NCBI GenBank assembly: GCA_964035545.1
Contig: OZ037767.1
Location: 14,307,801-14,371,800 of the forward strand
Direction of reading: 5' to 3'
From: Bugula neritina
Taxonomy: Eukaryota > Animalia > Bryozoa
Length of the DNA: 64,000 bases
Notes under the pieces: generated by a model
What the model was told of the DNA's origin: nothing
Database searches by the model: none
What the model saw: the letters and a program-made list of their open reading frames with translations, nothing else
Program-made: the position numbers and the translations under genes
In this document: positions 1-4,794 of the stretch, in pieces
How positions within the stretch are numbered: the stretch's first letter is position 1
Layout: the number at the start of each line of letters is the position of its first letter

Positions 1-1039
1 TGAGTAAGATACACATCCAACTTTACTTGTTTGTCTCCTCCTCCATGTCTTTTCTTATTATCCTTTTTAAATTCCTTTACAAATTTCTGCTCTGCATGCA
101 GCTCATCACTTGTAAAAAGCCGGTCTCTACTCTCATCACCATGGTAGTGCACAAATAAATATGTTCGAGATGACGGAATGTAGGTATCTGTAAAAACCTT
201 CCAAGCACTTTCTACAAGAAATATCGATCCAAACTTGTGTAAAATTAATTTAGATCAATATAACATTTGCTATGGTAGGTTGGCAATTATTTTAAATTAG
301 TCACTTTAATATCTGCGTTGCATATTTATACAGCCATACTCACCATACAGTATTTTTTCGAGATGGAGTCGTGTCTCCTCATCTCTATCCTTCATATCCT
401 GTGTGTACTCCCAATCTTCTTCAATACCCAAATACTGTGTTAGGTCTATGTAGTCCTGCTCTGTGAAAGCTTCCACAGTGCAGTATCGAGATGTCATCAA
501 GTAACACAATTCTTCTATATTTTGATAGTAAGGTGCAGCTACTTTAATATTCAACTCAAAGTTGTAGTCTTTAGCAAATGCTCTCAACTTTGTAGCACAA
601 TTCTTTCCTCGAGCACCACACGGAGCATAGGTAAGATACATGTCCAACTTTACTCGTTCACTTAATTCGTTCTGATATCTATTGGCATACTCGTTTCTAT
701 AAGCATTCATGAAGTTCTCCTCTGCATGTAACCCCATAGCATTTTGAAAAAATCTATTGTGATTCTCGACACTAGGGTGGCGGTGTACAAGTAAGAAGGT
801 CCTAGACTGATAATAGTTGTTATAGCCCATGTTTTTATAGTCAGACCTGACATTATCTAAAAATTATTTAGACAAGTGTAAAATAAAATAATTAATATTC
901 TTAAGAAATTCTTAGCAAAGTTAAAAAATAGTCACTTCAATATCTACATAATAATATTTGTATGTAATCATATATATATATACTCACTAATCACTCTACT
1001 ATCTGTCAATGGTAAAGGAATTCTTGGTTGATTCTGCAT
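1..1039 (-). CDS. AID/APOBEC-like cytidine deaminase with at least two tandem deaminase domains (gene A; 3' end runs off the window)
   Basis: Hand-spliced exons on the minus strand: 1039-988 (MQNQPRIPLPLTDSRVI, donor GTGAGT, phase 1); 856-344 (domain 1: RTFLLVH...GLHAEENF...KLDMYLTYAPCGARGKNC...IKVAAPYY, acceptor TTTTTAG, donor GTGAGT, phase 1); 211 to <1 (domain 2: SAWKVF...SRTYLFVH...ELHAEQKF...VKLDVYLT, acceptor TTCTTGTAG). All junctions are in frame. HxE and PCxnC are the deaminase Zn motif. Confidence 0.88.
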
Positions 1040-1576
1040 ATTCTTCTAATCCGCTGAAGTTTATTGCAACCAACTATTCATGTGTCTAGTTGTTATCTGA
1101 CACAGCATACGCGGTTGTTGAGAATCACAGGTCAGGTTTTTCAGGTTTATTAACCAATCAACTTGTCTAAAAAGTTAGCAGCCATTGTCATGTTGTTATT
1201 CACTATTGGACAAGTAAACCTAAACTATTATAGGAATAAGGTATAGGATAATTGTTTATTAATAATATTTATTTTGAGAAGTTGTCTGTGTACTCTCATC
1301 TGATTGGTCAGACTATTGAGTATATATAGCCTGAGTACCTACTTTATGGAATTATAATTGACAAAGTACACACTAAACTATATGAGTCATATTTATACCC
1401 AAGAACTAAGTATATTTTATATATCTAATCTAATATCTCGCGCAATAAATACTCAGCTACAGGATAATATGCAGCAATATACTGCCACATGCTTCATTAT
1501 ATTTCATATGGCAACACTATCAGTACAGTAAACCTGAAAAGGGTCAGCATTTTGTACTATTGCATGTATTATACTT

Positions 1577-2230
1577 ATTTTATGCAGTAACACTTATAAT
1601 ATGATATACGTATAATAGGAAGATATTAGAGCAACCTACAAGCAATGGGGATACCCATCAAATAATTCATAAGCTAAACACTTACTAAGATAGAGTGTTG
1701 AGTGAAATATTAATAATTATATTATATGCCATCACATATGTTACTACATATAATTTTAGTCCAGTATAATAAAGCGGAAGTAGACTATAAAATATCTTTG
1801 AGTAACAAATTGTATTTAGTGCCAACTTTTCTATTAAATACAGACAATAATATGCTTAAATAATCAACTTCTTAACTTGCCCAGGATTTTGCTGTTAAAA
1901 TGAAAGTATTTATAGGTGACCCAAAGATTTTTCTGTTATAAACTATAGTGTATATAAGAAGTGCAACTGAGTTAGATTGAATAGTATCATTAGTTGATCT
2001 TAGTAGGAATTTTGACATAAATTGTAATACAAAGTTAACAAAATACAGTAAAATTTTTCCTTTTGTCAATCAGAGAGGTAAACATCTGTACAATAATTAT
2101 ATATAATCTAACACACATTTGGTATAACTCTACAACTAACATATAGTTACAGGTAAAGTAGATAAAGGAATGCAGCTGCATGCAGAAAAGTATAGGTCAA
2201 GTAAAACAGGTTAAAATTCCCAGAACTCAG
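1577..2230. repeat. Local segmental duplication, module A (copy 1)
   Basis: Collinear with about 11283-11930 and about 16150-16730 (shared strings include ATTTAGTGCCAACTTTTCTAT, ACACACATTTGGTATAACT and GTTACAGGTAA); an internally deleted copy lies at about 13515-13690. Confidence 0.85.
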
Positions 2231-2392
2231 TTTTATAAATGGACCAGCTCTACATGAACTCAGTTAATTGTTTAGTTCAGGTCCATCTTGCTTCAATTTT
2301 ATAAATGGACCAGCTCTACATGAAATCAATTACTTTTTTAGTTCAGGTTCATCTTGATTCAATTTATTAAGTGGTCCAGCTCTATATGGGCT
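2230..2392. repeat. Short tandem repeat, about 67-bp unit, about 2.5 copies
   Basis: TTTTATAAATGGACCAGCTCTACATGAA...TTTAGTTCAGGT(C/T)CATCTTG occurs at about 2231 and 2297, with a partial third copy at about 2364. Confidence 0.75.
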
Positions 2393-2678
2393 GAATATGT
2401 CCAGCACTGCAAGACAGCTGCAGATGTTCCAGTTTAAGATGTAGGAAATTTTTCTTTAGTTATCAAACTATGTAGAAGTTACTATATATACCTCATTACT
2501 AATCATACAGTCTTTATAAAATGTATGTCCTGCTGTTATGATATATACTCTGTATGTATAATAAATATAAAAAGACAGAACACATGTGAACACTCAATAG
2601 AATACAAAATGTTGAGCCCTAAATATAACACTGCAGGAGAGTTAGATAATATATTATATGTGGTATATTATATACTAA

Positions 2679-3093
2679 GCCTAGGACCACACTGTGCGTA
2701 TTTTTGCATGCGAAAATTTAAAACACAAGTAGCAACGGTGTCCACTGTATGCGTTAAGAAAACATTTGCACTTGTCGCTCAGCATTCTGAACGCAGGTGC
2801 GAATCGTCTCTGTCGTCGTCACGTAATTGGCTGGTAGTTATTTAGCGAGCCCAGTTTTTTTAATTTTAGTACTACATTCCAGAAAGTTGCGTTTTATTGA
2901 AAGCGAGTACGATTGAAAAACGAAAACTTTATTTATCCCGCACTTGTAGCCATAACAACAAGGCGAGCAGTAAAGTTAAACGCAAATATTATTAGCTAGT
3001 AGTTTTCCGATCTCACTGACTCTACAGTGGACATCTTTGCTACTTGTGGTTTCAATTTTCGCATGCGAAAATACGCACAGTGTGGCCCTAGGC
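2679..3093. mobile_element. Non-autonomous PIF/Harbinger-type MITE (copy 1, 415 bp)
   Basis: About 70-bp terminal inverted repeats GCCTAGG(A/G)CCACACTGTGCGTATTTT(T/C)GCATGCGAAAAT..., flanked by a TAA/TAA 3-bp target duplication. Related copies at 5066 and 44435. Confidence 0.85.
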
Positions 3094-3152
3094 TAACATG
3101 GTATATATACAAACATATATATACCATGTATGTATAATAAATATAAATATGA

Positions 3153-3330
3153 ATATATATATATATATATATATATATATATATATATATATATATATAT
3201 ATATATATATATATATATATATATATATATATATATGTATATATATATATATATATATATATATATATATATATATATATATATATATATGTACAATCAT
3301 ATATATATATATATATATATATATATATAT
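3153..3330. repeat. (AT)n microsatellite
   Basis: Long, nearly pure AT dinucleotide run directly after the MITE. Confidence 0.97.
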
Positions 3331-4112
3331 TTGTATCTATATATATGTATAATCATATACATAGTTTATGCTGAAAACTATGTTTCAGCTATAGTTAGTA
3401 GGTCTAGTCTTGTGATGCATATCTCATAATACCGAAGTTATCTCTATTATAGCATTTAGCATTTGCACACTACCTATTTTGCTTTAGTTTAGTTTTTAGT
3501 TTATTCTATGCGTTCAGTTGAGCATTTTTAGATCCAGGCTGGACGATTACAGAATTACTAAAGTTCTGCACAGTTTGGCTCCATTGAATATTATCTAAGT
3601 ATGCGATCTTATTTATAACCAGCAATACTTAACTCTATTTCTCTTAATTTTATTATTTATATTATAGATAAATATTTTTTATGTTTTGCAGGTCAAATGT
3701 CACAAAAACATCACAAAATATGCTACCATGTGTCGATAAATTACAGATAAATACTGATTCAAACACGAACATGACAGTAAAGTCACAGTTTTATAATTTA
3801 AACTCCACTATATCATACTCAACCAAAAGTTTAGAAACTTGAGGCTTGCACATTACATAAATTTATAACAAATATTTTGTAAACTGCTCAACTATATAGA
3901 AAAAATTCTATTAATGTCACAAAGAAAAGGTGTTCATACTTACAAATACAAAAAAGTGATCTCCATAGAATAAATAACAATAATTAAAATGTAGTAAATT
4001 CTACAAATTATAAAATGCTATGTAAAACTATTTTATGTTAAATTCAATTTGAAATCGTATTAAGTTCACTCAGATTATAGATGTATATTTTTGACACCAT
4101 CTCCCAACTCAT

Positions 4113-4794
4113 CTAGCTCAATAATCTACGTATATCTATGGCTTCCATTCTTTCGTTGGTTCGCTCATCTCGATTTATCATAGCCTGTGTTCGCTGCCAG
4201 CCATCTTCCAGTGGAAAACCTAAGTACTCTGCCAGCTTCCTGTAATCTCCATCTGTGAAACCATTCACATCAGTGCAGTATTGAACTTCCATCAATTCAC
4301 CTAATTCTATTTCATTTTTATAGTAAGGTGCAGCGGCTTTAATATTCAACTCAAAGTTGTATTCTTCAGCAAATTCTATCAGCTGCCCAGCACAATTCCT
4401 TCCTTGAGCACCACACGGCGCATAGGTAAGATATATGTGCAACTTTACACGTTCTACGTCTGTTTCTAATCTGTCCCCATAATCTGCTCTGTAAGCATTC
4501 ATGAAGTTCTGCTCTGCATGTGACCCCATAGTATTTTGAAATAATCCATTTTTATAACCAGTAGAGTGCACAAGTAAGAAGGCCTTTCGAGGAAAATGTG
4601 AAATGGCGATGTTTTCATAGTCTTTCCAAACATCATCTAATGGAAATATTTAGACAGGTGAAAAATAAATTAATTAATATGAAAGATTAACAGACTACAG
4701 AAATATTTATTGTCATGAATAGTATCTTCATGTAGTCATACTTACTAAGCTGTTCTTGTGTCAAGGGTAAAGCAATTTTTCCTTGATTTGCCAT
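4113..4794 (-). CDS. AID/APOBEC-like cytidine deaminase, single domain (gene B, paralog of gene A)
   Basis: Exons 4794-4746 (MANQGKIALPLTQEQL, donor GTAAGT, phase 1) and 4636-4113 (DVWKDYENIAISHFPRKAFLLVH...GSHAEQNF...KLHIYLTYAPCGAQGRNC...IKAAAPYY...RRLLS-stop). Same intron position and phase as gene A and collinear with gene A domain 1. Confidence 0.88.

Follow-up and report, generated by a model that had tools for sequence, protein, structure and literature searches.

The window analyzed here is a stretch of 64,000 nt (G000:C3:14307801-14371800; coordinates are those of the window unless prefixed with C3 or L) from an AT-rich bryozoan genome (∼32% GC in this stretch, with (TA)n microsatellites). 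At its left end lie two minus-strand genes, gene 1 and gene 2, with predicted products resembling the AID/APOBEC family of cytidine deaminases (Table 1). An earlier note on this DNA had described three minus-strand domains with the H-A-E motif, two of them complete with YLTYAPC-x6-C, and reading of the sequence confirmed them. The two complete domains are carried by minus-strand open reading frames (ORFs) at 306-830 and 4113-4571. The third starts at an acceptor at 212/211 and runs off the left edge, as the note had said; it has no ATG and is hence missing from the ORF list. The splice models with short first exons were also borne out, by phase-1 GT donors following the exons at 1039-988 and 4794-4746.

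With these splice sites, gene 1 most likely encodes a three-domain protein (intact, zinc-less, intact) and gene 2 a single-domain protein. In domain 1 (D1) of gene 1 the predicted zinc site consists of H-A-E at 728-720, P-C at 623-618 and a second cysteine at 599-597 (P-C-x6-C); the corresponding residues of gene 2 lie at 4520-4512, 4418-4413 and 4394-4392. Domain 2 (D2) keeps H-A-E at 98-90 and has lost the zinc ligands P-C...C by a deletion located outside the window: it reads YLTHSMNDAG at the place of YLTYAPCGA...NC in the intact domains. Retention of intron 2 would lead to a stop 11 codons on. No N-terminal signal peptide was found in either gene; both exon 1 products are polar (MQNQPRIPLPL... 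and MANQGKIALPL...), and in genes C1, C2 and A the ATG is preceded, at a distance of 9 nt, by an in-frame TAG. This agrees with the view of the earlier note that the products are not secreted enzymes of the SNAD type.

Table 1. Positions of the deaminase gene features in the window and of the deaminase units on contig C3.
Feature	Position	Strand	Description
Gene 2, 45-nt leader	4795..4840	-	Directly before ATG; common to all paralogs and B. neritina (upstream alignment of C1, C2, A, two metagenome contigs and B. neritina; unit B read)
Gene 2, exon 1	4746..4794	-	MANQGKIALPLTQEQL plus 1 nt, then phase-1 donor A/GTAAGT; no hydrophobic signal peptide
Gene 2, intron 1	4637..4745	-	109 nt, GT...AG
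Gene 2, single deaminase-domain exon	4113..4636	-	Stop TAG 4115-4113; no donor at the homologous end, hence terminal exon
Gene 1, promoter-proximal region	1040..1210	-	CCAAT 1209-1205, inverted CCAAT (ATTGG) 1158-1154, 45-nt leader before ATG
Gene 1, exon 1	988..1039	-	MQNQPRIPLPLTDSRVI plus 1 nt, then phase-1 donor A/GTGAGT
Gene 1, intron 1	857..987	-	131 nt
Gene 1, domain-1 (D1) exon	344..856	-	513 nt, phase 1-1, intact domain; donor TATG/GTGAGT at 343
Gene 1, intron 2	212..343	-	132 nt; pyrimidine tract, then TAG acceptor; 99% identical to copy A intron
Gene 1, domain-2 (D2) exon, 5' part	1..211	-	Acceptor 212/211; whole exon 474 nt (G000:C3:14308011-14307538), 262 nt of it left of the window
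Gene 1, intron 3 and domain-3 (D3) exon	D3 G000:C3:14307405-14306876	-	Intron 3 132 nt; D3 intact (H-A-E, FAPCGAQEKNC), ends in stop
Unit A	C3 14251.7-14253.5 kb	-	3 domains
Unit B	C3 14274.1-14276.7 kb	-	4 domains
Unit C	C3 14306.9-14312.4 kb	-	Gene 1 with 3 domains, gene 2 with 1

Single domain exons were used as the input for all searches, structure predictions and trees. The best-scoring Pfam profiles were NAD1 (46.9 bits) and SNAD4 (41.5 bits), both against cut-offs of 27; dCMP_cyt_deam_1 scored 14-16 bits against a cut-off of 25 (E-value 0.01-0.05). For 7 of the 11 domains found in the array described below, NAD1, SNAD4, APOBEC2, APOBEC3 and APOBEC4 were above or near their cut-offs (the gene 2 domain matched NAD1 at 1.2e-09, plus SNAD4, APOBEC2 and APOBEC3), and Pfam Inv-AAD gave no match to the domains of the array. 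Lingula anatina AID-like deaminase 1 (LaAIDL1) and other invertebrate AID/APOBEC-like relatives match NAD1 and SNAD4 about equally, so this pair of profiles establishes membership in the superfamily and not the clade. A profile of 23 family members, searched against all PDB sequences, matched APOBEC3H, 3F and 3G only, with the β4/loop-7 segment IKxAAPYY aligned to LRIFASRLYYH of APOBEC3H.

Structure prediction gave the same answer. The AlphaFold2 model of D1 (pLDDT 84.6, pTM 0.83) was compared with the PDB by Foldseek, and all 50 matches listed were AID, APOBEC1 or APOBEC3; for the D2 model (pLDDT 85.1), all 50 were likewise AID/APOBEC. The TM scores of these predicted models reached 0.80, and no CDA, dCMP or TadA structure was among the 50 matches listed for either. 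The conclusion that the genes encode AID/APOBEC-like deaminases, and not nucleoside or tRNA deaminases, is thus well supported by the profiles and the predicted folds, and the family assignment of the earlier note was upheld. By analogy with other family members, the enzymes may carry out C-to-U editing of nucleic acids and act in innate defence. The family is small: 74 proteins were found at an E-value ≤0.001, and 29 at ≤1e-10, among 1.84 billion representatives, which supports the lineage-specific expansion that had been proposed. The closest named proteins are hypothetical proteins of Bugula neritina (54-56% identity), and the best named relative is LaAIDL1 (AWK77801.1; E-value 6.8e-10). 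Metagenome contigs were up to 84% identical at the protein level and, in the flank, up to 98% at the DNA level, and an NCBI B. neritina contig (L020) is syntenic with the deaminase cluster. From these relations and a shared 756-bp repeat family (see below), the source is taken to be a bugulid bryozoan near to the NCBI B. neritina assembly yet distinct from it.

A six-frame search of the 216-Mb, 321-contig assembly found 11 domain exons, which lie without exception on the C3 minus strand, in a stretch of 60 kb. They make up four genes with 3, 4, 3 and 1 domains, arranged in three units (A, B and C). The cluster therefore continues to the left of the window, as the earlier note had supposed; its count of three domains in two genes describes the share of the window correctly and falls short of the locus, in that gene 1 has three domain exons and the array 11 exons in four genes. 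Unit A repeats the gene 1 series of an intact, a zinc-less and an intact domain. D1 is the sole intact domain of unit B: H-A-E is replaced by T-A-E in B_D2, by S-A-E in B_D3 and by D-V-E in B_D4; the latter two also lack P-C...C, and B_D4 is truncated to 118 aa. The zinc motifs H-[AV]-E ... P-C-x(n)-C are present in D1 and D3 of gene 1, in gene 2, and in A_D1, A_D3 and B_D1. A possible origin of gene 2 as a D1/D3 chimera was rejected; in a sliding-window comparison it was closest to D1 types throughout.

The flank downstream of each unit is triplicated (G000:C3:14297888-14301871, 14268991-14272964 and 14246838-14250629). The three flanks are 88-90% identical over at least 4 kb and contain no long ORFs, which indicates that the three deaminase units are part of a larger segmental triplication. 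No deaminase cluster beyond the array was found when the genome was searched with Pfam Inv-AAD, SNAD4, NAD1, APOBEC_N, LaAIDL1 and protein P0044; the first-look filter of this profile search is insensitive (NAD1 recovered 1 of the 11 known exons), and the result is no evidence of absence.

The domains have the anatomy of exons of common genes. The seven internal domain exons measure 513, 474, 501, 495, 453, 510 and 498 nt, all multiples of 3, and each is bounded by a phase-1 acceptor of the pyrimidine-tract/YAG type and, at the homologous position, by a phase-1 GTGAGT donor, so that splicing should join the domains in one protein. The terminal domains close with a stop codon and lack a donor. 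An ATG exon, the 45-nt leader and two CCAAT boxes were found ahead of first domains only, and for five of the seven downstream domains the open frame contains no ATG ahead of the domain. Units A and B and B. neritina conserve the CCAAT elements, which are putative promoter elements and are absent upstream of gene 2. The leader with CCAAT and inverted CCAAT (window 1040-1210; leader 4795-4840; L013:8815-9000; L020:7450-7655) is better conserved than the coding sequence, both among paralogs and against B. neritina, and is a candidate for a shared regulatory module.

The same arrangement was seen in related DNA. The three-domain gene occurs in identical layout on one metagenome contig (L017), where all donors and acceptors are preserved. 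On the B. neritina contig, exon 1, D1 and D2 are followed by a zinc-less domain 1 kb further on, and the NCBI annotation of this contig gives a spliced two-domain protein. This genomic anatomy strongly supports the prediction of two or more deaminase domains in one polypeptide.

Local DNA comparisons of the window covered 1-3270 and 3320 onward. From the 5' flank to the end of intron 2, the identity between copies A and C is 96-99%, except in the 51-nt exon 1 (90%); from the D2 exon to the 3' flank it is ∼79-81%. The drop in identity places a conversion or crossover breakpoint at the intron 2/D2 boundary, and the near-identical 5' halves indicate a recent conversion or duplication. D2 and D3 are open in both copies despite ∼19-20% divergence, for which the chance under random substitution is ∼1.5-3% per exon, and their lengths differ between A and C by 24 and 21 nt, multiples of 3. 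The dN/dS values range from 0.46 to 0.91 (0.59 for D2). Such high values fit the fast evolution described for antiviral AID/APOBEC clades (PMC5889660), but may also reflect relaxed constraint. Against B. neritina, the flanks are 81-86% and the deaminase genes 66-69% identical, which indicates that the genes either diverge faster or are not orthologous, owing to birth-and-death turnover of copies.

A tree built from 39 domains separated the first domains from the downstream domains, and each domain type (D1, zinc-less D2, D3, B_D2 and B_D3) had its own counterpart in related bryozoan sequences; the architecture itself is therefore older. The earlier note had called the cluster young and expanding. 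The 96-99% identity of the 5' halves of A and C agrees with this, and the domain types do not, since they already have counterparts in relatives, the zinc-less one included. The A-P-C-G-A segment is absent in 10 of 10 D2-type sequences, and H-A-E is kept in some only. On the basis of sequence and model, we read D2 as a putative pseudo-deaminase domain that has been maintained. D2-type domains also show a variable Lys/Glu-rich, coiled-coil-like insert after strand 4, with ∼8 residues in unit A (L014:7351-7845), ∼30 in P0021 and over 100 in P0024; the D2 of the window lacks this insert. In related contigs (P0099, P0027; L020:10023-10568), some zinc-less domains at the end of a gene carry a strongly acidic Asp/Glu/Ser-rich tail.

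Taken together, we consider it likely that the left end of the window is the right-hand end of a lineage-specific array of genes for intracellular AID/APOBEC-like polynucleotide cytidine deaminases with a spliced multi-domain structure. Each gene would consist of a conserved promoter and leader, a first exon of 16-17 codons without signal peptide, and one to four exons of one domain each. Splicing would string the phase 1-1, multiple-of-3 exons together into three-domain (gene 1) and single-domain (gene 2) proteins, and intron retention or exon skipping could give shorter in-frame isoforms. The first domain, which always keeps H-A-E and the P-C-x6-9-C part of the predicted zinc site, most likely deaminates C to U in viral or retroelement single-stranded DNA or RNA, in the manner of the APOBEC3, Lingula and sea-urchin enzymes. 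The zinc-less middle domains, with the APOBEC fold kept in the model, are probably non-catalytic and may serve in nucleic-acid binding, oligomerization or regulation. Their role could be comparable to that of the inactive N-terminal domain of APOBEC3G.

Several points weigh against a spliced multi-domain product. Neither of the protein searches returned a transcriptome-derived spliced multi-domain protein; a 400-aa match (P0094) considered as a multi-domain protein was rejected, being a read-through, in a genomic contig, of an intron that happens to be open. No public sequencing run recorded as RNA was found to hold the sequence; the two runs listed as holding it are not so recorded. A stop follows soon after the donor in every intron (∼2-11 codons), so that unspliced RNA could yield single-domain products. 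In the comparison of copies A and C, the D2 and D3 exons (80-81% identical) show no more conservation than intron 3 or the 3' flank (79-80%), and dN/dS of D3 is 0.91; relaxed constraint and diversifying selection would account for this pattern equally well. B_D4, cut to 118 aa, may be a relic. As for catalysis, the Cys-Cys spacing is 6-9 residues vs. the usual 2-4, and zinc binding and activity are only predicted. The early stops, the unremarkable conservation of D2 and D3 with the dN/dS of D3, and the truncation in unit B would all be accommodated if only the first domain were translated, either because the transcript ends there or because intron 2 is kept (adding an 11-residue tail), and if the downstream exons were decaying relics of tandem duplication; the D2-type domains without zinc ligands, many of them also without H-A-E, fit such decay. 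It is harder to reconcile with D3, which stands behind a degenerate D2 and yet has lost no catalytic residue in either copy or in the relatives. Decay would also have had to spare all reading frames at ∼20% divergence (a chance of ∼2% per exon), to change exon lengths between A and C by multiples of 3 only, and to leave the seven internal donors and all acceptors in place in the paralogs, L017 and B. neritina, and the zinc-less domain forms its own conserved sequence set across several lineages. We judge translation of the first domain alone to be unlikely.

The same fold could also serve outside defense, by editing self RNA or DNA as APOBEC1 and AID do, or in a non-catalytic role like APOBEC2 and APOBEC4. 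When assayed in bacteria, some of the sea-urchin and Lingula paralogs showed no activity, and host-gene editing was raised as a possibility by the authors of that work (PMC5956068); the unusual Cys spacing points in the same direction. Such a role is quite improbable in our view, given the high dN/dS, the tandem expansion with recombination between copies, the narrow distribution of the family, and the faster divergence of the genes (66-69%) than of the flanks (81-86%) against B. neritina, although non-orthology could give the same difference. Features of this kind match antiviral AID/APOBEC-like clades (PMC5889660) and would be unexpected for a housekeeping editor. Secreted SNAD-type enzymes, or free-nucleotide or tRNA deaminases mislabelled by weak profile matches, might explain why SNAD4 scored almost as high as NAD1 and why dCMP_cyt_deam_1 was matched weakly. 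Near-equal NAD1 and SNAD4 scores are also found for the intracellular Lingula enzyme and are thus no mark of secretion; the N-terminus is not hydrophobic and has an in-frame stop just upstream of the ATG; and the PDB sequence matches, like every listed fold match, were all AID/APOBEC. The free-nucleotide, tRNA and secreted-toxin deaminase readings were rejected on profile, fold and N-terminus, and we regard this group as very improbable.

The preferred reading of an array of spliced multi-domain deaminases has its closest precedent in LaAIDL1, an active enzyme with two tandem domains that is expressed in gut and mutagenic in E. coli (Liu et al., 2018; PMC5956068). Both systems are found in lophophorate invertebrates, form lineage-specific gene families with clustered members, and comprise intracellular proteins with tandem domains, features that are predicted for the bryozoan products. 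The two domains of LaAIDL1 are both canonical (H-A-E + P-C-x2-C), whereas the bryozoan genes reach three or four domains and have P-C-x6-9-C spacing, zinc-less middle or later domains, and an activity that is predicted only. In the 39-domain tree the Lingula domains grouped together, apart from the bryozoan sequences, which argues that the domain duplications were independent in the two lineages.

A second comparison is offered by the mammalian double-domain APOBEC3 enzymes (A3B, A3D, A3F and A3G). They share with the bryozoan genes the fold (Foldseek TM 0.66-0.80), a tandem gene array, high dN/dS and gene conversion between paralogs and, on the predicted gene structure, tandem domains from local duplication with one catalytic and one non-catalytic domain. 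The sequence identity is only 16-22%, however, and the duplications are independent. The inactive domain of APOBEC3G is N-terminal and keeps its zinc site, whereas the putatively inactive bryozoan domains have lost the zinc cysteines and follow an active-type first domain. Each bryozoan domain is a single phase 1-1 exon, whereas an APOBEC3 Z domain spans several exons.

Classical AID/APOBEC-like deaminases of invertebrates have a patchy distribution. They form lineage-specific expansions of 2-22 paralogs and tandem arrays that include pseudogenes; mosaic paralogs point to recombination, and in some clades the two zinc cysteines are separated by inserts (Krishnan et al., 2018; PMC5889660). The bryozoan array matches this picture in distribution, expansion, arrays, mosaicism and Cys inserts. 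NAD1 (PF18778) is a vertebrate, usually single-copy clade, and SNAD4 (PF18750) comprises secreted sponge enzymes (PMC5889660); the bryozoan genes differ from these in being multi-copy and without signal peptide. Our literature searches found neither a paper on bryozoan AID/APOBEC-like members nor a published account of members with three or four domains or of a domain type conserved without its zinc ligands.

Outside vertebrates, AID/APOBEC-like mutators first became known in 2018, and tests of them have been confined to two species. The locus adds the phylum Bryozoa to the AID/APOBEC-like deaminases, with no earlier report found in the literature searches, and the tandem-domain genes would represent a second, independent origin of such deaminases in lophophorates, reaching three and four domains. 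A natural series of catalytic-type and zinc-less APOBEC-fold domains in one gene should be useful for studying the function of non-catalytic domains. The small family and clean paralog set make assays of activity and specificity tractable, and the deaminase domains, which are small and compact and have unusual features in loops 5 and 7, are of practical interest as base-editor scaffolds. The layout of one domain per exon in phase 1-1 also makes isoform diversification directly testable. In a more speculative extension, bryozoans would have built an exon-modular deaminase system independently, in which alternative splicing and recombination of units produce combinatorial isoforms of 1 to 4 domains, with catalytic domains mixed with a zinc-less targeting or regulatory module. 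We rate this extension as unlikely; if true, it would be a way to diversify an innate restriction factor that has not been described for any AID/APOBEC family.

Repeats are frequent around the deaminase genes. Two copies of a ∼265 bp repeat, 88.7% identical (2678-2942 and 5065-5328), flank the deaminase genes in the window, and the repeat is also seen at ∼2996-3127 on the minus strand. The repeat gives rise to recurring ORF fragments ('...QVAKVSTV...FALVAQHSERRCESSLSS') and is probably a short interspersed element. Long (TA)n microsatellites are located a short way downstream of gene 2 (∼3088-3429) and of gene 1 (L012:8030-8650). Stretches within 8991-19115 of the window (G000:C3:14316791-14326915) and within C3 14278-14289 kb are 70-86% identical, some of them repeatedly, to L020 ∼3300-6400. 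The latter is the region upstream of the B. neritina deaminase gene, and the matching stretches form a repeated module between deaminase units. A 756-bp repeat (L020:16119-16874) is present in at least 40 copies with 93-97% identity across the chromosomes of the genome, a young interspersed family common to both assemblies. Elsewhere in the window, an intronless ORF of 488 aa on the plus strand (33198-34664) carries a rhodopsin-family G protein-coupled receptor domain (7tm_1, E-value 2.2e-12). A minus-strand ORF of 291 aa (62873-63748), near the deaminase cluster, contains a RING and two B-box zinc fingers in a TRIM-like architecture.

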